From Paraphysomonas bandaiensis (lineage: Eukaryota > Protista > Chrysophyceae), in assembly GCA_965644295.1 (NCBI GenBank), contig CBFFRP010000376.1, positions 62,001 through 126,000 of the forward strand: a stretch of DNA of 64,000 nt. Reading direction: 5' to 3'. The position numbers were made by a program, and so were the translations under genes. The notes below the pieces were generated by a model. It worked only from the letters and a program-made list of their open reading frames with translations. It was not told where the DNA came from and searched no databases. Below, in pieces: positions 7,673 through 56,132 of the stretch (position 1 is the first letter of the stretch; each line of letters starts with the position of its first letter).

Positions 7673-8225
7673 GTAGTGAGTAGTGAATGTCTGATTATTA
7701 GAAAATAGGCGCTTAAGAGTCAGAAATAATGTAGCAAAACAATTTAACTAACTAGTGCTTAACTATGATATCCTACTATTTAACGCTACGATTGCTGCTT
7801 ACTGCTTATGCGTCACCTCAACCACTAAGATGCAACCACTTTTGCTCTATCACTCAAAGCAAACTCAGTGAGCAAGCAGAATGTTGATATACCTGACATC
7901 TGCTAACTTAAGAATTTTTCTGTGAACTAGCCCGGATGCTTGACTTCAGCAGGAAGTCCAAAACCCCGGATGCCTTTTTGAGGCGGCCCTATTTCCGGAT
8001 GCCTGTTTATTCATCAAGAGTCAAGACGTCAAGACCCAAAGACGTCTACACAAGTGACACTAGTTATAGTGTTCCTTGTACCACACAAGCATTAGGCTAT
8101 GAGTGGGCAGAAGAATATTTGCTGAGACTATATATGAGTCTCACGCCAGTTTCTGGGAGAAATATCTCCTGTGTACTTATCCCCCAGAACACCACGAGAA
8201 GATGCGAGTCCGATTTTGTGGAGGG
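7673..8225 (-). mobile_element. Non-autonomous retroposon copy A (ribozyme-like head at 8225, LINE-like tail)
   Basis: Aligns by eye along its length with copies B, C, E and F; minus-strand 5' end CCCTCCACAAAATCGGACTCGCATCTTCTCGTGGTGTTCTGGGGG. Confidence 0.9.
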
Positions 8226-8717
8226 CACGATAATTCATTGCAGTATAATTACATCATGGGTTGAGCTAGGTATGTTTACAAGCATGCGACCTCATTATTT
8301 AATTTATTAATTAATTGTCTAGAACCAGCGTCAAATAATTGTTACGCAAAGAGAATCATTGATAAAGAAAGATCAGATATTTTACTATCACATTATCACT
8401 GATGTATTAGAAGATTAGAAGAGATGTATATTATTCAACCTAGTCAAAAATATTGAATTACCTCGTTACGGTAACTTGTAATGTGGCTATAATAGATAAT
8501 AGGTGTTTCATTAAGACACTAATAATGGTACAACGATAAGATGACTAAGCTATATACAAAGTACTGAGTATCAAGTTATTGTGCCCGTTCTGGTTTCTTG
8601 GCGCGCTCAGTATTTTTATAGGACTCTAATATATTTATTCTCAGACTATCTTCCTTTATTATTATATGATTATACACTTTTAGCTCAAATAAACTAATTG
8701 AAGTATACAATAATAAA

Positions 8718-9209
8718 CTCCAACAAAGTCGGACTCGCATCTTCTCGTGGCGTTCTGGGGGATAAGTACTATTTGATTTGGGTAACAAGTACAGGAGATA
8801 TTTCTCCCAGAAACTAGCGTGAGACTCATATATAGTCTCAGCAAATATTCTTCTGCCCACTCATAGCCTAATGCTTGTGTGGTACAAGGAACACTATAAC
8901 TAGTGTCACTTGTGTAGACGTCTTTGGGTCTTGACGTCTTGACTCTTGATGAATAAACAGGCATCCGGAAATGGACCCGCCTCAAAAAGGCATCCGGGGT
9001 TTTGGGCTGCTTGCTGAAGCCAAGTATCCGGGCTAGTCCACCTTAAGGACAGAGTGCGAAAGTGATTGTACCTTGGTTCTTGCGGGCACAAGTAGCTTTC
9101 GTAGCGTTAAATAGTAGGGTATCAGAGTTAAGCACTAGTTAGTTAAATTGTTTTGCTACATTAGTTCTGACTCTTACACGCCTATTGCTAATTATCAGAC
9201 ATTCACTAG
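8718..9209 (+). mobile_element. Non-autonomous retroposon copy B (inverted relative to copy A)
   Basis: Reverse complement of copy A; possible degenerate TSD TATACAATAATAAAC / TATAAAAAATAAAC. Confidence 0.9.
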
Positions 9210-9494: not shown

Positions 9495-11129
9495 TTATGC
9501 GTTAATCGGAATTGTCAGTATTGAGCCAGTAAAAAAATCAATTTTAGCTCCAGGAGGGCTTTGGTCAAGGTAGAGTCTGTCACGAGACGATATTACAACG
9601 GCAAGGCGGTTGCCCTTAGGCATGTCATAGGAAGACATTGTCACATTTACGTCGAGCTGTATTTGCTGGCCCGGTGTAACATCTTTAAAGGTCCAGGGAG
9701 AAAATGTGAAAATATGACCTATATCATTGTCCCCCACTGAGAGAAGATAAACTATCAACGTCCCACTGGAAGCTGTTGGAGTTATATACAGCTGGAGGTG
9801 TGGAATACCACGTATATGTACATCCGTTGTAAACACAGCGGATGCGAAAACGACCCCATATGTGCGACTAATATCCTCCATACGTACAGGCTTTTGAACG
9901 TCAAGATATGCATCCACAGTTTCAGTAATATACGCAATTCCTCCAGAAATATTGGCTGTTGCCCCAGTGGTTAGTGAGGCAGCGACATCGCTGGTCCGCT
10001 TTCTCAAATTGACTGGGGGAGTGTAGCCCGATAGTACTTCCTCCGACTGTAGTTCAAATAGCAAACTGCCCGTGGACACATCTGCCATGGAGTTGTACTT
10101 TTCAATTTCTCTTCCGTTCATCGCATTGAAAATCACCATTGGCATATCGTCATCAGGACCACTTTTATTGTCCTTCAAATAGAAGTCGTTCCACTGTCCT
10201 GCACGGTGCCACACCTGATCTGGCAGACCAAATATACCTGGTAGCTCAGGACCAGCATGATCTCCAGGAGCAAACTCAATATGCTTGGGTACTGTTAATT
10301 CGTCGAAAAAGGGAGGAAATTGATTCGGAGTGAAGAGTGAGTCGCCAAGAGCATTCGCAATGAAAATAGCCGCACCGTTATCGTTAATTTGCTCAATGAA
10401 ATTTACTGCCGAGGAGTTTACAGTGAATTCATACAGAAATTCCAGATTAGTGTTGCTGAAGTAGTCATCGAATACAAGTTCCAGGTCTTCACTCGGCTTG
10501 CCTGTGATTTCAGCTAACACTTGAAGAGCTCTCACAGCCTCTTCGCGAATAGTTTCGCCATTACCTAAAAAGCTCTCGGCCATATCCACCCAGCAGCTCA
10601 TTGCCACGGCACTCTTAATTCGGGAATCCATAGCGCTGCCAAGGAGAGAAATGCCTCCGCCATAAGAAATGCCTGCAGACAAGTCAGAAAAGACAGCAGT
10701 ATAAGTATATAGAAACTTACCACTCACTCCAATGCGATTTGGGTCAGCATTTGTATTTTCGATTGTCCAATCTATAACTGTGCTCAAATCGGCCATATCG
10801 TTCGGTCCAGCCATATCTATGACTCCGCCGGATTCCCAAAATCCACGAGCAGTGTAGGATACTATGGTGTAGCCGTCCCGTGCATACCTGTCGGCAGGAA
10901 TCACATACTCCCATTTATTCATGCCCCAGCTGGATATAAAAATGATAGTGGGATTCTTGTCGCTCTTGTATCCTGGGCGAGGATCAAAGTAGATAGACTT
11001 CAGAGTGACTCCATCATGAGCGGTTATATCCGCTAAACGAAACCCAGCTTGAGTTAAATCCTCCACACTAGAGTTCGATAAGCACACCGCCAATGGCAAC
11101 AGGGCCACGGACAAAAAGGTAGTTAGCAT
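9495..11129 (-). CDS. Secreted CocE/NonD (peptidase S15 family) alpha/beta hydrolase; in-frame intron 10673-10720
   Basis: Signal peptide MLTTFLSVALLPLAVC; YTARGFWESGG; after splicing RIGVSGISYGGG (GxSY nucleophile elbow); GDH; PepX-like C-terminal domain. The ORF extension to 11339 is microsatellite. Confidence 0.88.
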   Translation of the reverse strand: MLTTFLSVALLPLAVCLSNSSVEDLTQAGFRLADITAHDGVTLKSIYFDPRPGYKSDKNPTIIFISSWGMNKWEYVIPADRYARDGYTIVSYTARGFWESGGVIDMAGPNDMADLSTVIDWTIENTNADPNRIGVSGKFLYTYTAVFSDLSAGISYGGGISLLGSAMDSRIKSAVAMSCWVDMAESFLGNGETIREEAVRALQVLAEITGKPSEDLELVFDDYFSNTNLEFLYEFTVNSSAVNFIEQINDNGAAIFIANALGDSLFTPNQFPPFFDELTVPKHIEFAPGDHAGPELPGIFGLPDQVWHRAGQWNDFYLKDNKSGPDDDMPMVIFNAMNGREIEKYNSMADVSTGSLLFELQSEEVLSGYTPPVNLRKRTSDVAASLTTGATANISGGIAYITETVDAYLDVQKPVRMEDISRTYGVVFASAVFTTDVHIRGIPHLQLYITPTASSGTLIVYLLSVGDNDIGHIFTFSPWTFKDVTPGQQIQLDVNVTMSSYDMPKGNRLAVVISSRDRLYLDQSPPGAKIDFFTGSILTIPINA

Positions 11130-11191
11130 ATCCAGCAATATTAGTAATTCACACCCTCCCAATATGAAGAGAAGCAGAGTGTACCTGCCTT

Positions 11192-11301
11192 TATGTATGT
11201 ATGTATGTATGTATGTATGTATGTATGTATGTATGTATGTATGTATGTATGTATGTATGTATGTATGTATGTATGTATGTATGTATGTATGTATGTATGT
11301 A
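11192..11301. repeat. (TATG)n microsatellite, about 27 units
   Basis: Directly visible perfect tetranucleotide array. Confidence 0.98.
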
Positions 11302-11650
11302 GGTAGGTATGCTCTGCTTGTATTCGTGTACCTATTCATCTACGTACTTTGGGAGGTATGTGTACAGCACCTGTACAGAACTCTCCTGACACATGATAAC
11401 TACACATGGTTACTGTGTTGTGGTTAGATACACGCCGAGCGGAACATATGGGCATTTTGGAATCTTTTTACCACTTGTTTGAGCAGATGGTAATGCGTTT
11501 CACACTTTTGATATTACGACAGAGTACCTGCTCATAACATATCACCGGAGTGATCTTAAGTATGGGTGCGACTGGATCGATGCAATTGGAAGGTATGATG
11601 CCATCTGCTCGCACTCATTATGCCTTGTTAATCTTTACGTAGAGTTAAAT

Positions 11651-12821: not shown

Positions 12822-13346
12822 AGTAGTAATAAATGTCTTACTATTAGCAATAGGCGCTGAAGTACCAGAACTAAAACAGCATTGCAATTTAACTAGCTAG
12901 CTAACTAGTGCTCAACTCTGATATCCTATTATTTAGCGCTACGATAGCTGCTTGTGACTGCAGAAACCAAGGTGCAACCACTTTTTCTCTATCACTCAAA
13001 GAAAACGCTGTGATCAAACAGAATGTTGATATACCTGACATCTACTGACTTCAGGATATTGACTCCTTAGTATGAACAGCCCGGATGCTTGATTTCAGCA
13101 GGCAGCCCAATACCCCGGATGCCCTTGAGGTGGGCCTATTTCCGGTGCCTGTTTATTCGTCAAGGCTCAAAGACGTCTACATAAGTAACACATATATTAG
13201 TGTCCCTTGTACCACACAAGCATTAGGCTATGAATGGGCAGTACTATATCTGCTGACTATATGTGCGGCTCATGTTATTTTCGCGGAGGAATATATATCC
13301 CCCAGAACACCACGAGAAGGTGCGAGTTCGACTTTGTTTAGGGGGG
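12822..13346 (-). mobile_element. Non-autonomous retroposon copy C
   Basis: Minus-strand head CCCCCCTAAACAAAGTCGAACTCGCACCTTCTCGTGGTGTTCTGGGGG; same body and tail as the other copies. Confidence 0.9.
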
Positions 13347-13753: not shown

Positions 13754-15151
13754 TTATCGTCGGCCCAAAAATATCCATCTTCTACACACTACAGCACAGA
13801 GTGATAACAGAACGATTATAGGAACAGGTTGCAGTAAGTATGAAGACAGCGATGTGGTATCGGTGGTGGCCGCGGGCACACACGACTGGCCAGAGGAATC
13901 AACGGAAGCTCGGGGAATTGGAGCACTCTGGGTTGACTTCAGACTTTTTGCCTTCACGGATTGCGAAGACTGCTTATTTCCACTGGATGCAGTATTAGTA
14001 TTAGACCCAATATCTTCGATGTCTCTGGTGACTGTTTCTGGGCTAACGGCTGAAGGATTCTTCAATGCTAACTGCCCACAGGCGCCGGCAATATCCTGCC
14101 CCATTTCCTGTCGCACACGAGAAAATATCTGATACTCGTCTGAAGTACAGATCTGGTAGAACCGATCAATACTGTCCTGAGTGGGGGGCTCAAAGTTTTG
14201 ACCGGGAACATCCGTGGGATTGTAAGGGATCAAATTCAATAAGATATGTTTCCTGCGAGGAGCTAAGAGTTTACCTAGTTCGTGTGCATGCTCCTCAAGG
14301 TCGTTCACATCTTTGATGAGGATGTATTCGATCATGACACTTGTCACCTTCATTAAGGTGCGCTTGTTGGGCTTAGATCGACTGACGTGATAGTCGATGG
14401 CATCAATAAGTTTATCAATATGATGCCCAGCAGCGGCAGGAACGATTTTCAATCGTACCTCCTGATTCGGTGCATGTAGAGAGAGTGCCAGGTTAACGTT
14501 TGTAAGCTCATCGGTGAGTCGTTTCATATACTTGACAACTCCGACGGTGGAAACCGTGACGTGTCTTGCAGAGAGCCCAAGGCGCTTGGAGTCCACTAAA
14601 AATTCAACGGCCAACTTGACATTCTCGTAGTTATTTAGAGGTTCACCCATTCCCATAAACACAACGTTGCGAACCTTGGAAACTTGATTAGCGTATACGA
14701 CCTGCTCAACTATTTCACCGGACGTAAGATCGCCGATGATTCCCATTGTACCAGTAGCACAAAACCTGCACCCCATTTGGCAGCCGACCTGCGACGAAAC
14801 ACACACTGTAGTGTGTCCAAGATGTTGAATGACAACAGTCTCAATACGATGCCCATCCTGCAGCTCAATGAGCAACTTTGTGGTGTCTCCCCTCGATGAC
14901 ACTGACTTCTCAACAACCTTTGAGGTAAACTGCGAAAATCCCTCTTTCAGTTCCTTCTCAACAGCTTTTGGTACACACCATTCTCGCATAGGAACATCCT
15001 GTAGAGCGACATCAGGATGCGCAATCATCCACTTCCAAAGCTTGTACTTGTGCTTCGAGCTGCTGTTATGTTTAGAGAAGACGTTGGACACGCTGACCTC
15101 ATCCCAGATCGACTTGTGCACTAAATCCGCATTCTTTCTCCTAGGCGCCAT
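13754..15151 (-). CDS. rlmN: RlmN/Cfr-family (class A) radical SAM RNA methyltransferase with C-terminal hydrophobic anchor
   Basis: CVSSQVGCQMGCRFCATG (CxxxCxxC), VFMGMGEP, SLHA, NLIPYNP, GQDIAGACGQL; intronless. Confidence 0.93.
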   Translation of the reverse strand: MAPRRKNADLVHKSIWDEVSVSNVFSKHNSSSKHKYKLWKWMIAHPDVALQDVPMREWCVPKAVEKELKEGFSQFTSKVVEKSVSSRGDTTKLLIELQDGHRIETVVIQHLGHTTVCVSSQVGCQMGCRFCATGTMGIIGDLTSGEIVEQVVYANQVSKVRNVVFMGMGEPLNNYENVKLAVEFLVDSKRLGLSARHVTVSTVGVVKYMKRLTDELTNVNLALSLHAPNQEVRLKIVPAAAGHHIDKLIDAIDYHVSRSKPNKRTLMKVTSVMIEYILIKDVNDLEEHAHELGKLLAPRRKHILLNLIPYNPTDVPGQNFEPPTQDSIDRFYQICTSDEYQIFSRVRQEMGQDIAGACGQLALKNPSAVSPETVTRDIEDIGSNTNTASSGNKQSSQSVKAKSLKSTQSAPIPRASVDSSGQSCVPAATTDTTSLSSYLLQPVPIIVLLSLCAVVCRRWIFLGRR

Positions 15152-28765: not shown

Positions 28766-29030
28766 GTACACGATATTGCTCTATGGAATAGCTGCACACT
28801 GCATCAGACTCCGAGCATTCCACACCAGCACAGGCATGATACACACACCGCTACGTACACTGACTGCTGTATCATGCACCCGCCCACAGGCATCTATACA
28901 CGCCTATACTGTGTACTACAGCAGTGTATACGGAAGTGTACAGCGGTGTGTACGTATCATGGAGTGGTCATGTATATACAGGGAGAGCCCGCACACATGC
29001 GATCACATGCACAGATCAGAAGATCTGTCA

Positions 29031-31334
29031 ATGGAGCGCTATGTGGATCTGTGTGCGTCCACCCCCTCCCTCTGCAATGATCTTCTGTTGAGGAGGGGCG
29101 CGGAGTTCATCCGTTATCTGTCATCAGAGCGAGGGTGAGTGTGTTGGATGCGTGTGTATGTAATCATATCACTGTATTGTTACTTATGCTTGAGATCAGT
29201 CTGCGGAAACTACCCGACACATCTCAGGTTATCCGCCCCGTCCCATTACCCCCTCTTACCCATTCACAGGCTTCGGTGTTGCGGTATTTGTTGACGAACC
29301 ACTACCTCTTCATGAATAACGGGACGGAAGAAATGCTCATTCAATACTGTACACAGCCCCCTTATCCTACAGATACGTGTATGCGAGTATGTCAAACTTT
29401 TCTCACTAAGGTTGGTGTGTATTTTCTGTGCATTTCTCCATTGACTGGTGGCAGTCCTTGGCAGTTCGTATGAGTTCAGCTACCGCATCCTGGAGAGCAC
29501 GAATATCTAATGCCATTGAAAGAGTAAATAAACTACTAATATGTACTTTCTGCTCAGTGATATTTTGTAGTTGGAACAACGCTTGGTGGGTAGTGAAGAG
29601 TGTGTGTGGAACTCTTATCTTTTTCACATACGAAGCGGCGCTATTCCAATTGAAAAAGGATGGAATGTCGAACTTGTTAATGCAGATACTCGTCGCACAT
29701 GCAACAACCACGAATCGAGTCATAGTAGTTTGATACTGAATTCTAATGTATCAGACGAAGGCTCTAGGGTGTCGATTGACTCTGTAGAATTAGAAGAACA
29801 AGAAAGATTTCCGGCCAGTGAAAATGAGACGGTGAAGCGACCCCGATTAGAGAAGATACCTGAAAAACCAGCTGCAGTCCGAGAGAAAGTGGAGCCTGAG
29901 ATTATATCGAATGGTGTAGCTTTGCCATCATCGCCGTTTCAACCGTCTTACGACATGCCCTCTCTCTGCCCATCTATGTTCACGAAAGTGGCAGATACGG
30001 TGAATATTGTTAAATCGTGCTCATTGCGTTTGTTATCACTCTCAGCAACCCGATCACTTTCGAACTCTGAAGTCTCAGATATCTCTACTCTTATCTGTGA
30101 AGCCCTAGACAGCGTATTTGATACAGGGTTGGGTGAGGCCGGTGTGGCATCTTTACTTCCGGAATCTACGACTGGCACGCGTTCATGTGTTCAACAGTGC
30201 AGCGGCTTGGTCTTTATTACTTCCTGCCTTCGTCTATTAGATTTAAGTCATTCTCGTATTAGTGATGAGCTGATTTGGGCTGTGGCTGGGTGTTATATGG
30301 ATAGTAGCGCAAGGTCAAGTCAGTATGTTGCACTTTTTCTATGTGGGGTAGTTTTACAGCGCTTGAGGCACCTCACCTCCCCGGCATCTAGAATGATGAT
30401 GAAAACCATTGACATGTGTGTGCAGCGACACCCAGAAGAGAGTATTACATTTATACTTGGTCCAGCCCCCCGTTCCCCTCCACTTTTATGTACAGTATCT
30501 CAGCCGGCACCAATAGATCCCGTCGTACCTCGACGAAATAATTTTCAGTGGGAGTGTATTCAGAGATTAATCAGACAGGTAGGTTCATCGGAATAGTTTC
30601 GTTCACTGTGTGATATATATATACAGAAAATGTTGGTCAAGGAACAGACCAACGAACTTCTTCTACATATATTGGGTTTACCACAGACCTTCACTGTATC
30701 GCAAAATACAATGTATATGGCGAAATCTCACGAAGTGTCGGTCCTCGACGCTCTCCTGAACGCTGACCCCAACCGCTTTAGCTCTTTGTTTACTATTGCG
30801 GAAAATGGCTTTCAACGAAGGGTAAATGAATTTTGGGCGCTTTCTGTGTCTGCGAGTATTGACGACGAGGCTTCTCATGCATTGGTACCTGCGTCAGACT
30901 CTTTTGCGGAATTGAGAGTGAGGCACTCGGATCTTGAACCTGAAGTTATGCCCATTCTTGCTTCCATTTGCACTTCTGTGAGTACTCAATTATTTACGTT
31001 ATGCTTGCCGTACTGACGAATAGTTGTGATGCAGTCAATGAAGTCATTATCACTTGAAGTTCTTAGTCTTGTAATAGCACACCTCGATACTGTGACAGGA
31101 AACTCGCAGAAAGTTGCCGCACTCCCGGTTTTAGCTAATCTGATTCACTCCATCATTCAGAGGTAAGGAGCTATCCACCGCTGCTGTATACAAATACTAA
31201 CTAACGTGCCATATGTTCACTATCTTCACAGTCATCCAAACATATTAGACACTTGCCGTGGTGAACTGAAGAGTATATTACAAAGATCATCATCAATGAT
31301 AGCTCGAAATACTCTATCCATTATAAGTACATAA
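29031..31334 (+). CDS. FANCE: Fanconi anemia group E (FANCE)-like protein, multi-exon
   Basis: Helical C-terminal region VLQRLRHLTSPASRMM..FILGP..QWECIQRLI..LANLIHSII..LKSILQRSSSMIARNTL resembles the FANCE C-terminal domain (LTSSASR) as recalled; exons joined by GT-AG introns. Confidence 0.65.
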
Positions 31335-31838
31335 ATACTACAGATAAGCTTGTATATATAAAATTGTTTACGCAATTATTTTAAAGTTGAAATACTATGA
31401 AATTCATGTTTTGTCAACATCTTCTTGTTCACAATTAGACGAGCCCTGATATCATTAATTTCTTGACAAGACACTTTGCCAAACACCGCAATATGTGAGA
31501 ATCAAATGACAATTCTTTTACATAATATATTCTTATTCTCTTTATAACCCACTAAAATAATTTAGTATAAAGTGAATCGTGAATTTCTGAGCCACACAAC
31601 TACCTCCTACAATATTGCTACACAGTACGAGTTTAATATAGCATATAGTATCTTATTACCTGTCAAACTGGATAAATTCCGGTCACAGTGGCACGGAACA
31701 AGGTGTGACTCAAAAAAGCTAGAGGATTTAATTTTCTTTTTACGTCTATGATGTGTTCTATAGTTTGAACAATTTACTCTAGTTAAAAGGTAGTACAGTG
31801 TTGGTTTTAGATGAGGTGAACTGATACCTGAAATATGG

Positions 31839-32047
31839 TTGGGTATAATCTTAGCCCTTAGCATGATGCAACTTTTGTATAATGCGTATATAACATATGT
31901 AACTACGTGTAAGTTTTACCGAAACGGGGGGAAACAAAGACTATTGGGTATAATCTTAGCCCTTAGCATGATGCAACTTTTGTATAATGCGTATATAACA
32001 TATGTAACTACGTGTAAGTTTTACCGAAACGGGGGGAAACAAAGACT
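31839..32047. repeat. Exact tandem duplication of a 104-bp unit (31839-31942, 31944-32047)
   Basis: Two identical copies separated by 1 nt, read directly. Confidence 0.95.
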
Positions 32048-32131
32048 GCGTATGGGAAAGTTAACAAATATACAAAAGGCACTACATATGTTGTGTTACA
32101 TCAATCTAAAACCCAAATCATGATTCGTTTT

Positions 32132-33160
32132 ATTCCCTAAAACATATGTGCCTCGACTGCACACATGAATCCATCACCCAAATAAGGGAAACTGCATTTC
32201 AATCGCATAAAAATGTGCTACACGAAATACAGAGAACTCAGACCTTACCCAACTGGATCACATCTGCACTACGGAGACTCTCCAGCAGAGCCTGGAATCC
32301 CTCCATCCCACAGGTCGAGAGATACTGGACTGGAACCATCACAGCAGCCCAACTGGAAACGGTCTTCGGAGACGACATACACAACCACCTGACGGCTCAC
32401 AGTCTACGGAACCTAGAAACAGTGGTTATTAATCTACTGCAACCGCTTTACACTGCAGCGAGGCTTATGTTACAGGATCGCGGTTGTCGCTATATCACCA
32501 TGTCCAAAAGGCCGCCCAGGCTACTCCCGAGACCCCGTCCGAAACGCAGTCAGTCAAGACAACGTCCGAGAGTCCTTAGATTACTAGTAGGGGTCCAACG
32601 AAGACCCCCCACAGCGTATCCGACTCCAGACACATGTGCACACCTCACAGGTCCTACCCGACAGAACATTGGACTGCCCAGACCTCCACAACGCCGACGG
32701 CTTCGACAACTCTATCTACTCCCGCAGCCCCTCAGGAGCACAGTAACACAGACTACAAACCCAACTCCTCCTCCCAACAATCCCCACCACTCTCAACCCA
32801 CTCATCTGGAACTAGGTGCACTCAGGACCCTAATTCAGAATGATGAGCCCCCTCCAAAACCAATGGAGTACCATCCCAAGGGGAGACCTCCAGACCACAT
32901 GCGCCAGTGAGTCCAGGACCCACGTTAATGGCGAATTAATTTATACTCACAAAAGAACGGAAGTGGTTGCACCTTGGTGCTTGCGGCGTCGCACAAGTAG
33001 CTTCTGTAGCGTCAAATAGTAGGATAAAAGAGTTTGCATTGATTAGTTACGGGTAGTAGTCTAACTAGTATGACTAGCATTCCACTAGCCACTAATGGGT
33101 GCCGGCTTTCAACGCCTACTGCTAAATAACAAGACTTTCAATATACATACATATATATAC
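32132..33160 (+). mobile_element. 5'-truncated non-LTR retrotransposon (LINE) fragment: ORF C-terminus (32146-32910) plus 3' UTR
   Basis: Frame begins SLKHMCLDC (HxxxxC half of a CCHC knuckle). C/A-rich composition unlike host genes, no introns. 3' UTR (32961-33140) is homologous to the retroposon tail and ends in a TA/TACA simple repeat. No RT domain is present. Confidence 0.7.
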
Positions 33161-33393
33161 TGACACTACTGCATGAGTTGTTTTGTTTGATTTTCCTCAC
33201 TACTACACCACTACATCAATAAACTCAAGCACTTATCAATAACTTAGCTTGATATACAAAAGTACACTTCATAGAAGTATTCGTTCGAACCAGAATCGCT
33301 ATCACCATTTCCTTAAGTAAGTCTATTAGGCAATGTAATCCCCGAATATAATGGATAATGGAGGCCACCTTGTCGAATGATCACTACTTTGTT

Positions 33394-33477
33394 CCCTCAA
33401 CAAAGTCAGACTCGCACCTTCTCGTGGTGTTCTGAGGGATAAGTACCGGAGAGATTTCTCCGGAAAACTAACGTGGG
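33394..33477 (+). ncRNA. Putative HDV-like self-cleaving ribozyme (L1Tc/ingi Pr77-type) at the retroposon 5' end
   Basis: P1 CCCUCA/UGAGGG; P2 CUCGC/GUGGG; P3 ACC/GGU; L3 UUCUCGU; P4 CCGGAGA-GAUU-UCUCCGG; J4/2 CUAA with candidate catalytic C33468. Manual fold only. Confidence 0.62.
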
Positions 33478-33715
33478 CTACAGAGTCAGCAGATATTGTT
33501 CTATGCCCGCTCATCTTGTGTGGTACAAGGAACACTATAACTAGTGTCACTGGTGTAGACGTCTTTGGGTCTAGACGAATAAACAGGCATCCCCAAATGG
33601 GTCCACCTCAAAGAGGCATCCGGGGTATTGGGCTGCCTACTGAAGCCAAGCATTCGGGCTAGTTCACCTTAAAGAGAGAGAGCGAAAGTGGTTGCACCTT
33701 CTGGTGCTTGCGGTG

Positions 33716-33870
33716 TATATAAGAAAATCTTATTATTACATGAGAACGGTTGTGTACAGAAACTAGTAATATATCTATAGACTAACTAAACTGGGCTTGG
33801 CATGTACTTCTAGTGGCGGGCAACCGTCTTGGGACTGCTTGTGCATCGCTGCGACCACCATGGTGCAACC
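33716..33870 (-). mobile_element. Nested antisense 3'-tail fragment of a related LINE/SINE subfamily
   Basis: 13-bp TSD GGTGCTTGCGGTG (33703-33715, 33871-33883); minus strand starts GGTTGCACCATGGTGGTCGC..GCACAAG and ends TAATAATAAGATTTTCTTATATA. Confidence 0.8.
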
Positions 33871-34476
33871 GGTGCTTGCGGTGCAGCAGCTGTCGTAGCA
33901 CTAAATAGTAGGATATCATAGTTAAGCGTTAACTCTTAAACGCCTACAGCTAATAATAAGACATCTACTAGTATTACTACTTTGTTAGAATACTACTTTT
34001 AAGGTCGTAAAACCATTGTGAAGTGTTGAGTCTGGAACTCGTTAAAACTGAAAACACACAGCTCAAATTCAACAGATATACCGAACATGTAACCGTAGCC
34101 CGTAGCCGTCTTACGCTTTCAACGGTTGTTCAGAGAATATGTTGTCACAGTACTTCATTCAACAGTGTTGCAGTACTTTTATATTTATCTACCATGCAAT
34201 GTAAAATATCAATATCATGTTCCCTAGCACCGTATGCTATATATATTTGAAAAGCGGATTGAGTACTAAATAGAGAATATTACGATGACAGATGGAGGTG
34301 ACTTATTATCGTAGTCATCTACCTCTATCCTTAAAAATAGTTAAAGATATATATACTACATTCAATATACAAAATATATTGCAGCGGAAATTTGAGGTAA
34401 GAATAAAAAAAAGATATCTACAATTGTGTTTGCTACAACACAAAGTGAAGGTGTACGTTGATAAGTACTTACTGTA

Positions 34477-36443
34477 TTAGACGATCTCAAATGCTTCTAC
34501 TACGGGAAGCACCTTTTTCGAGGAACTCGAAGATGTGGATCTAAAACTTTCAGTTCTTGGCGTCGCATACGCAATAAAGCGGGGAGACAAGTAGTGCACT
34601 CTCGTGCACTCTGCTGTGGTATGAATCGGCTCGCCCGAAGGAGTGTTGGGCATATAGCTTCGGTTGTACTCCGTTGCCGTTGTATATACCGGCTCAATTA
34701 TCGGAGCTGTGGGCGTAAATGACGTTCTTGATTCTATTGTCTCATGGACAGCAGACTGTACACTAGGTTTGGTATGTTTCAAACAGCAGGAATTACATCG
34801 TAGCCACAGCAGAAGAATCGAAGAGATAATGCATAACACAATTAGCATGTAGAATAGCAGCAGCATATTAGAATCATTTGAATCAAGCCCTAAGTCTTCC
34901 TTAGCGCTTTCTATGGCCACTGTAGGAGATGAAGTAGGCCACATTGAGACACTGGGTATTGGAGTGGGGGATATAGTAGGCGACCGAGTTACACGCGTCG
35001 GCTGCAGAGTGGGGGTGTGGGTGCTAACAGCATCCGTATACATTGATTCATATGAACTTATCATTTTCACGTTGACCAACCGACTTGCAACGTCATACGA
35101 ATGGCCTCCAAAAGATGAACTTCCCCAAGTGACGACTGTGCCGTCAAATTTCAAGGCAGCGAAGGCCTGAGAATTGGAGGATATGGACTTCACATCCATA
35201 AGCTGGTTAGATACGGATAAGGGAATATTTCCACCATAACGACTATCTCCCCATGCGACCACAGTATTGTCTGATAGAATAGCAGCCATTGCACCAGTGG
35301 TAGATACCATGCTCTTCACACCGACTGCCATCGCATCCTTCTCCTGGTTCGAGGGAATGTAGTATCCCCATACCACAACCTCCCCGTCGAGGAGCTCTGC
35401 AGCGAATGTCGACAAAGCAGTGAACACTCTGCGCACCTTCTCACCTTGAATTTCAGGTGGAATATCGGCACTGTCACCTCTACCCCAGGCCACCAAAGTA
35501 CCATCTTCCTTTAACGCACAGAAGGCGCTCGGATTGGAATACAATGAACGAACTCCTCCGTTTGAACTGAGGTCTGCGGATAAAGCGGAGCAATCTCCCC
35601 CTTGGTTTGCGTCTCCCCAGCAAATCACACTGCATAACGTCACCATGAGTATATTAATAACGGAAAGATAAAAGTGAAATCACACAGCTTTTACATCATG
35701 CCTCACCTCCCGTCAGCACGAAGTGCTGCATAAGCTTCAGCAGTCGTAGCAATAGCTGTAATGCCTCCAGCAGCCAACTGACTCGATATATCTAACGATA
35801 AATCATGTTTTCCCCATGGCACCACGCGTCCGCCCCCTAACAACGCTGCAAACCCTAAACGGTTCGAATATATCCAGCTGATGTCCTCACTCGACAGCTG
35901 CGCAGAAACTGAGGATAAGTCACCTCCGCGTTCAGGATCTCCCCATGCAACGACCCTACCATCAGAGGATACGGCTACAAATGCGTAATACGCTGGAAAA
36001 ACGCGCTGTATATTCACGAGATGAGACGATACCGAATCGCAACTTCCTCCTTTCGACGACTCTCCCCACGTGACAACTCGGCCACTCGACTTAATCGCAG
36101 CGAATGCATAAGGGTTAGGTACAATGCTGACAACACCGCTGTTAAGTGATGACTCCATATCACCCGCATAGCCGCCTTGACCCTCCCGCCCCCATGTGAC
36201 CACACGACCACTAGAACTAATAGCTGCATAAGCGGATAATGTCGAGTACACCGCTCGGATATTCTTCAGATATCTCTGCACTGAACTAGAGTCACCCCCG
36301 CGGCTGTTGTCTCCCCATGTGACCACTCTCTCATCTCCTCTAATAGCAGCGAATGAGAAATAGTTATGATTAGAAGCATGCTGAGAGTGAACGCTGACGA
36401 GAAGAGAAATGAACAACAGAGCCGCCGATAAGAGCATGTTCAT
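34477..36443 (-). CDS. Type I membrane protein with extracellular RCC1/BLIP-II-like repeats; intron 35630-35706
   Basis: Signal peptide; about 9-10 repeats AFAA(I/L)xxxGxVVxWG...GG; Pro/Thr/Ser stalk; TM MLLLFYMLIVLCIISSILLLWL; cytoplasmic tail. Confidence 0.88.
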
Positions 36444-55687: not shown

Positions 55688-56132
55688 GAGTAGTGAATGT
55701 CTGATATTAGCAATAGGGTGAAAGAGTCAGAACTAATGAAGCAAAGCAATGTATATAACTAACCAGTGCTTAACTCTAATATCCTACTATTTAATGCTAC
55801 GAAAGCTGCTTATGCGTCACCGCAAACATCAAGGTGCAACCACTTTCGCTCCATCTGATAATTTCAGGCTTTTGAGTCCTTAAGGTGAACTAGCCCGGAT
55901 GCTTGACCTCAGCAGGCAGCCCAATACCCCGGATGCCCTTGAGGTGGCCCATACCCGGATGCTTGAATTCAGCAAACAACCCAATACCTCGGTTACTCTT
56001 TAGGTGGGCCTATTTCCGGATGTCTATTTATTCGTCAAAAGGCCCAAGACGTCTACACAAGTGACATTTATTATAGTGTCCCTTGTACCACACAAGCATT
56101 ATGCTGACTGTATATGCGGCTTACATTAGTTT
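55688..56132 (-). mobile_element. 5'-truncated retroposon copy F (lacks most of the head; internal unit duplicated)
   Basis: Homology begins at AAACTAATGTAAGCCGC; the CCCGGATGCTTGA..CCCAATACC..GGTGG unit is present twice. Confidence 0.88.

Follow-up and report, generated by a model that had tools for sequence, protein, structure and literature searches.

R2, RTE and further LINEs carry HDV-like ribozymes at their 5′ ends (Eickbush; Ruminski, Webb and Luptak), and so do L1Tc-type elements. The ribozymes of R2 and RTE sit on the autonomous element itself. They adopt a nested double-pseudoknot topology with an L3 of the form TYYHCG*Y and a J4/2 of the form CNRA, and they serve to release the RNA of the element from a co-transcript. 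Their first base is a G, which pairs with U or C, and they match the published HDV descriptor. In the trypanosomatid elements L1Tc, L1Tco and NARTc, the ribozyme (L1TcRz, Pr77) occupies bases 1 to ~80 of the retroposon and cuts 5′ of position +1, which is a C. Its sequence harbours CACC, a 7-nt L3 ending in CGT, GGTG, a J1/4 ending in AGTAC and a GGAAR-CTAA stretch before the 3′ strand of P2, with a P1.1 of one pair, and non-autonomous derivatives (NARTc, RIME and SIDER) exist in these genomes as well. The L1Tco(78)Rz ribozyme of T. congolense is highly active, with ~95% cleaved in vitro; other trypanosomatid candidates that fold well were inactive in some cases, and a short P2 lowered activity (PMC4035085).

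The 64-kb window of the Paraphysomonas bandaiensis genome analysed here contains a SINE-like retroposon, copy E (Table 1), whose first 84 bases resemble these heads. The likeness to L1Tc/ingi heads had been pointed out in the first-pass annotation and is borne out by a comparison by eye with L1Tco of T. congolense, as the two have CACC-TNNNCGT-GGTG, AGTAC and GGAAR-CTAA in common (PMC4035085). The L1Tco sequence printed in Additional file 1 of that paper reads CACC-T..ACGT-GGTG, AGTAC and GGAAG-CTAA-G. The SINE has the sequence elements listed above for L1Tc, L1Tco and NARTc, including a possible one-pair P1.1, as well as TSDs of similar size and a predicted cut 5′ of a first base that is a C. 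It differs from them in its host, a marine non-kinetoplastid eukaryote, in a P1 whose 3′ strand is three bases longer, in a P2 of 5 bp and in having C rather than G after CTAA. Its L3 is UUUUCGU, versus UCAACGU in Pr77. Furthermore, the autonomous partner LINE of the SINE is devoid of the head, unlike L1Tc, the partner of NARTc. With the R2 and RTE ribozymes the SINE head shares the L3 and J4/2 motifs, and it would share their topology and mode of release; in contrast to them, it does not start with G, does not fit the published descriptor and does not sit on an autonomous element. Like SINEs derived from tRNA, 5S or 7SL RNA, the element is short and non-coding, has a LINE 3′ tail of the stringent type without poly-A, is flanked by TSDs and is present in thousands of copies. 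Unlike them, it has no Pol III promoter head, and it contains internal T4 and T5 runs. In the literature that was searched, no paper connects HDV-like ribozymes to stramenopiles or to Paraphysomonas.

Table 1. Positions of copy E, its parts and related elements in the window
Feature	Position	Strand	Basis or remark
TSD, left copy, ACTACTTTGTT	33383..33393	.	Direct reading
TSD, right copy	33976..33986	.	Same 11-mer as left copy
Copy E, SINE-like retroposon, 582 bp	33394..33975	+	BLAST and comparison with consensus
Putative HDV-like (L1Tc-type) ribozyme head of copy E	33394..33477	+	Loosened descriptor matches bases 1-84 of copy E; model R1
Helices predicted in the head of copy E	P1 33394-33399/33433-33438; P2 33411-33415/33473-33477; P3 33416-33418/33426-33428; P4 33446-33463	+	
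Single-stranded parts predicted in the head of copy E	L3 33419-33425; extra GUUC 33429-33432; J1/4 AUAAGUA 33439-33445; AAAA-CUAA-C 33464-33472	+	
Predicted catalytic C of the CNRA motif, J4/2	33468	+	Position from descriptor match; C76 of the consensus
Insertion or rearrangement private to copy E, 155 bp, between body and LINE-derived tail	33716..33870	+	Genome comparison
LINE-derived 3′ tail of copy E, ending in CTAATAATAAGACATCTACTAGTATT, no poly-A	33871..33975	+	
5′-truncated partner-LINE fragment: end of the ORF and the 3′ UTR that the SINE tail copies	32131..33152	+	
Copy A, old; head 85% identical to consensus; J4/2 decayed to CTGG	7757..8225	-	
Copy B, old; first bases mutated; P4 broken by an insertion	8717..9205	+	
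Copy C, old; starts with CCCTAAAC at 13343; P4 decayed	12830..13343	-	
Copy D, head-only fragment; model R1 score 21.9 bits	17934..18022	+	
5′-truncated copy without head	55768..56096	-	BLAST

The retroposon family and its partner LINE

The start of copy E had been fixed at its CCC in the first-pass annotation by means of an 11-bp TSD. Direct reading confirms the duplication on both sides of the element, which it delimits exactly. Copy E is an old, diverged member of its family, ~82% identical to the consensus over bases 1-320, with values of 91.8% for the head and 78% for the body. Of its private 155-bp insertion, one part resembles another repeat, with bases 324-435 of the copy matching elsewhere in the genome, and another part corresponds to inverted tail sequence, with bases 442-477 matching the tail in reverse. 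The GAGGG strand of P1 in copy E arises from a single G>A change, which replaces the U-G wobble of the consensus by a U-A pair.

The genome to which the window belongs (62.6 Mb, 669 contigs) contains 2,623 first-look candidates of this family. All 30 copies that we fetched begin exactly at CCCTCAAC. In 19 of them a TSD of 10-15 bp abuts the first C, and 17 of those 19 show no additional base at this junction. A typical copy measures 478-494 bp. The consensus, ~485 bp and non-coding, is composed of a head of ~85 nt, a body of ~205 nt and a LINE-derived tail of ~190 nt, and ends in CTAATAATAAGACTTTCAATA without poly-A. The LINE 3′ UTR and bases 293-488 of the consensus share 88% identity. With a 3′ end shared with a LINE of the same genome, variable TSDs and a defined 5′ end, this is a dispersed and very abundant family of non-autonomous, LINE-dependent retroposons. 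In old copies the head is usually conserved above the body (e.g. 87% vs 68% and 98% vs 85%), which points to a constraint on the head in the source elements, whichever function it may serve.

The partner LINE is 9.36 kb long, is flanked by a 13-bp duplication and contains one ORF of 3,021 residues with SET, APE and RT domains (L043:474-9536, minus strand; contig C440 of G000). The SET domain, of the histone-methyltransferase type, spans residues 1092-1196 and thus precedes the APE and RT domains. The element is unusually large, and RNA-type runs contain its sequence in great abundance. Another LINE family, ~60% identical in the C-terminal region, is also present. At least 40 full-length partner LINEs, 99-100% identical, start with AATTCTCTGCCC, which is not the SINE head. 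A search of 141 kb of partner-LINE loci with model R1, a covariance model built from environmental relatives of the head (see below), gave no match. No head was found on any LINE among the best 145 R1 matches in the genome (150 of 16,670 candidates scored), all of which look like SINE heads and score at most 48 bits. Since the autonomous partner LINE is devoid of the head, the SINE is a chimera and not a deletion derivative.

The fragment of the partner LINE that precedes copy E in the window corresponds to an insertion polymorphism, as a contig of run X18 joins position 32130 to position 33153 with 5 filler bases and thus represents the empty site. One sequenced strain lacks the LINE fragment. 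The 5′ junction of copy E is present in run X18. Another feature of a contig of run X18 is that the last bases of a LINE or SINE tail are joined directly to the first base of a SINE head (window positions 33145 and 33394), which suggests tail-to-head tandem insertions somewhere in the genome.

The head and its environmental relatives

The helices and motifs that had been listed for copy E, namely P1, P2, P3 (ACC/GGU), L3 (UUCUCGU), P4 and CUAA with C33468, were all found at the positions given in the first-pass annotation. The strands follow the HDV order, with the predicted cut at the first base of the element. The comparison with HDV descriptors and Rfam models, which the same annotation had proposed, gave a divided outcome, in that the unpaired motifs and P3 conform to the HDV pattern, and the full descriptor and the Rfam models do not match. 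We re-implemented the published descriptor (RNArobo hdv-stemP4 and hdv-looseP4, from the supplement of PMC4870747), which demands a P1 starting with G/R, a P3′ abutting P1′ and a P2 of 6-7 bp (PMC4870747). In our implementation it matched neither the consensus head nor copy E, for three reasons. The first base of the head is C rather than G/R, 3-4 extra bases separate P3′ from P1′, and P2 has 5 bp rather than 6-7. The extra bases can be read as part of an 8-bp P1 with a 2-nt bulge or of a 7-bp P1 with a 3-nt bulge. As for the conserved motifs, the L3 sequence TTTTCGT (TTCTCGT in copy E) conforms to TYYHCG*Y, the 3-bp Watson-Crick P3 (ACC/GGT) directly follows P2, J1/4 (RN) is AT and J4/2 (CNRA*) is CTAAC. 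P1.1 would be limited to one U-A pair, which in copy E would be C-A.

When the descriptor was loosened just enough to admit the head, it placed P1 at base 1; its background amounted to one locus in 6 Mb of simulated sequence and to none outside SINE heads in 618 kb of real sequence. The energy of the nested fold, calculated without the pseudoknot, is no better than that of shuffled sequences (z-scores of 0 to -1.2). An Rfam scan of positions 33000-34300 and of a consensus-like copy, with E-values up to 10, gave no ribozyme or small-RNA match. By itself this blank is uninformative, because even canonical members of the class described below score under the threshold.

A covariation test among the genome copies, as the first-pass annotation had envisaged, proved unproductive, since the heads are nearly invariant and hold almost no informative variation. 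Two variants dominate the best 145 R1 matches in the genome. The first has a perfect 7-bp P4 (CCGGAGA-TATT-TCTCCGG) and accounts for ~35 identical matches of 43.9 bits among the 145 listed. The second, GAGAGATTCTCTCT, has a G-U pair and scores 37.6 bits. A recurrent G21>A change in the heads makes P2 fully Watson-Crick; it lies in a CpG and may be a mutational hot spot only.

For the assessment of the helices we rely on more distant relatives. A metagenome pattern specific to this family gave 0 matches. A second pattern was restricted to the core common to the SINE head and T. congolense L1Tco, i.e. CACCTYHWCGTGGTG, a gap, AGTAC, a gap and CTAA, with no requirement for P1, P2 or P4, and it retrieved 51 metagenome contigs. 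In most of these matches, the heptamer after GGT is fully complementary to 7 upstream bases (P1), the heptamer before CACC is fully complementary to the one after CTAA-GA (P2), and a hairpin of variable sequence and length is found at the position of P4. The layout of the class is thus P1(7)-J-P2(7)-CACC-TCTACGT-GGT-P1′(7)-ACNAGTAC-P4-GGAAR-CTAA-GA-P2′(7). L1Tco can be fitted to this layout by eye, its P1 having 7 bp and its P2 6 of 7 pairs. CTAA is found at the site of the catalytic C across the environmental class, with CCAA or CAAA in a few members, and the first base is mostly C. A GGAAR motif between P4 and the catalytic C is conserved throughout and accounts for the odd-looking 'AAAA' spacer of the SINE head.

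Model R1, which contains P1, P3 and P4 and not P2, aligned 35 environmental sequences out of the 51 contigs. At least 6 of 7 pairs are formed in both P1 and P2 in 25 of these 35 sequences, and 18 are perfect in both helices. The environmental members have 13 P1 strands and 15 P2 strands of distinct sequence, and the covariation is therefore not an artefact of redundant contigs. In an alignment of 12 sequences (A2), 96% of the cells are paired, compared with 68% after shuffling and ~40-52% with the partners slid, and 17 of 22 pairs have changed on both sides. The corresponding values for an alignment of 41 sequences (A3) are 89%, 58% and 39-47%, with 18 of 22 pairs changed on both sides. All seven P2 pairs show double changes in A3, which cannot be a model-fitting effect, as the model used to align A3 has no P2. 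P1, P2 and P4 thus covary strongly in environmental sequences that share the core.

Independent Rfam HDV models match three members of the class at the predicted coordinates, below threshold: RF02682 with 35.5 bits on L070:18-89, and weaker sub-threshold matches on L109 and L113. In L109 the head of the ribozyme class lies right where an ORF that encodes APE and RT domains begins, which makes it the sole member found to head a LINE; this ORF is only distantly related to the partner LINE of the Paraphysomonas genome. The environmental class was found among contigs L063-L113. One of them, L069, harbours two copies in inverted orientation ~1.5 kb apart, and a group of members with CTGCTTC is preceded by a poly-A run.

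How the SINE head relates to this class was assessed with R1 and by its individual features. The model matches the head of copy E at positions 33395-33480 with 33.3 bits, and SINE heads score 33-48 bits versus 45-92 bits for the environmental members. The scores of the SINE heads are not independent evidence, because much of them derives from the core motif with which the relatives had been retrieved. What is independent of the core is that strands able to pair are found in the SINE head where the class has P1, P2 and P4. GGAAA-CTAA also occupies its class position. With members such as L070, L072, L082, L097 and L113 it shares an identical core, the order of the elements and the GGAAR spacer. 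Nevertheless, those members have a canonical 7-bp P1 and P2 with no insertion. The SINE head is atypical in having three more bases in the 3′ strand of P1, a longer J1/2, a P2 that comprises 5 bp and one further isolated pair, and a CTAA followed by C rather than G; a P1 insertion of this type was found in no strong environmental member. R1 aligns the P1 of the SINE to bases 2-8 with a 3-nt bulge, which would place the cut after C1, one base inside the element. The G run allows an alternative register, from C1-G45 through A6-U40. By nearest-neighbour energies, P1 starting at C1 is favoured over P1 starting at C2 by ~4 kcal/mol, and this register agrees with the observed ends of the copies. Taken together, these features support the assignment of the SINE head as an atypical member of the covarying, L1Tc-type HDV-like class. 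Catalysis by this particular head is likely rather than assured.

Transcription and the origin of the 5′ ends

The explanation that we favour, and consider reasonably probable, is that of a LINE-tailed, non-autonomous retroposon whose L1Tc-type HDV-like head self-cleaves just 5′ of C1. The RNA of the head would most likely fold into the nested double pseudoknot and cut immediately 5′ of C1, and the cut would free the element from any longer transcript. The result would be a template of unit length that begins with the base at which every genomic copy starts. The machinery of the partner LINE would presumably copy it by target-primed reverse transcription, leaving duplications of 12-15 bp. The element thus probably trims its own 5′ end. 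For this atypical head, folding and catalysis, as well as the source of its transcription, are inferred.

RNA evidence was drawn from 22 public runs in the form of assembled contigs, which show no RNA 5′ ends, over positions 29000-34900. SINE-like sequence is present in RNA-type runs at modest depth, and marine poly-A metatranscriptomes contain the genes of the window. RNA-type contigs also reveal a spliced plus-strand gene at 29133-31398, upstream of copy E, with seven GT..AG introns of 42-69 nt. We regarded duplications displaced upstream of the element as a sign of a read-through template; such 5′ transductions were sought in the 30 fetched copies and none was convincing.

The main alternative is that the head contains a Pol II promoter, internal as in Pr77/jockey and equipped with a downstream element, so that initiation at C1 alone fixes the 5′ end and the ribozyme-like fold is vestigial or inactive here. 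A head that is both promoter and ribozyme, as in L1Tc, is compatible with self-cleavage and is not counted under this alternative. The same 77 bases of L1Tc are indeed a Pol II promoter as well as a ribozyme, and the essential promoter element, CGTG at +25 to +28, is preceded by CCACC (PMC4748587). The SINE has CACC-TTTT-CGTG, with CGTG at +30 to +33, which we counted as within the quoted range of +28 to +32 (PMC4748587). However, CGTG is located inside the L3/P3 core of the ribozyme and its presence follows from the ribozyme motif; as it belongs to that core, it proves neither reading. A Pr77-type promoter would explain the sharp 5′ ends equally well, it would account for ~2,000 copies with no need for host transcripts, and the P1 insertion and short P2 could mean that catalysis has been lost. 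Against it, the consensus and both major head variants retain P2, P4 and GGAAA-CTAA, which all follow the promoter element, and such a promoter function is documented in trypanosomatids only. Furthermore, 17 of 19 copies lack, at the junction of duplication and C1, an extra 5′ base of the type that may result from cap copying, which argues weakly in the same direction. On balance, we hold a promoter devoid of cleavage to be rather unlikely.

The element had been described in the first-pass annotation as SINE-like with no recognisable Pol III promoter, and this description stands, as no tRNA, 5S or 7SL head was found. There is no A or B box in the element, even with up to 1-3 mismatches allowed, and ARAGORN detected no tRNA-like fold in it. 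The consensus contains a T4 run at +26 and a T5 run at +447; runs of this kind normally terminate Pol III. Pol III transcription thus appears unlikely, given the lack of A and B boxes and of a tRNA-like or Rfam head, together with the two T runs. The options that remain are read-through from host genes combined with self-cleavage, or an internal Pol II promoter. An ordinary Pol III SINE with an unrecognised promoter, in which the head would be a structured, non-cleaving leader with a role in RNA stability, recognition by the LINE protein or another process, is quite improbable. The general anatomy would suit it, the element being short and non-coding with a LINE-derived tail and sharp 5′ ends, as would the lack of Rfam HDV matches to the head. 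Nevertheless, it has the missing promoter boxes, tRNA-like fold and Rfam small RNA as well as the T runs against it, and it offers no account of why the head, cut site included, matches a covarying ribozyme class in such detail.

Lastly, the probability that the HDV-like pattern arose by chance in a repeat is minimal despite the unexceptional fold energy and a descriptor loosened after the fact, as that descriptor has the very low background given above and starts at the first base of the SINE, and as the same core is flanked by covarying P1 and P2 in unrelated environmental contigs.

Ribozyme processing of R2, RTE and L1Tc-type elements is already known, and the strategy itself would therefore not be new. 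What would be new is a highly successful SINE-like family with a ribozyme head that is absent from its own LINE, which would demonstrate that modular capture of such heads is possible. The presence of a Pr77-type core well outside kinetoplastids would also be new, as would a naturally occurring form whose P1 is bulged and whose P2 is short, which, if active, would widen the structural limits to be set in ribozyme searches. In a broader view, for which the arguments seem to us evenly balanced, the L1Tc/Pr77-type core would be an old and widespread module of eukaryotic retroposons rather than a trypanosomatid speciality, with P1 and P2 fully covarying in no fewer than 13-15 unrelated lineages represented by soil, plant-associated and marine contigs. 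Here a LINE tail would have been added to it, independently of the partner LINE, yielding a SINE in which a self-cleaving RNA, perhaps also a Pol II promoter, takes the place of the Pol III promoter. The ~2,000 potential cleavage sites in transcribed DNA could affect host mRNAs, an effect that has been proposed for the SIDERs of Leishmania. Searches of further eukaryotic genomes can start directly from alignment A3 and model R1.

Further copies in the window

Using copy E as a BLAST query, we identified five more copies in the window (Table 1). Copies A to D had been reported to share the start of copy E. This is the case for A (8225) and D (17934); B has a mutated start at ~8717, and C begins at 13343 rather than at 13346. 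The compensatory change reported for copy C, CCCCC/GGGGG, does not exist. The additional Cs belong to the flank (...gtccc) and reflect an alignment slip, and CCCTAAAC pairs with CTGGGGG. A C5>A change in the head of this copy actually breaks a pair.

Copies A and B are arranged head to head, ~490 bp apart, just downstream of a peptidase S15 gene on the minus strand (9495-11339). Copy C is found in sense orientation just downstream of a radical-SAM gene, also on the minus strand (13754-15151).
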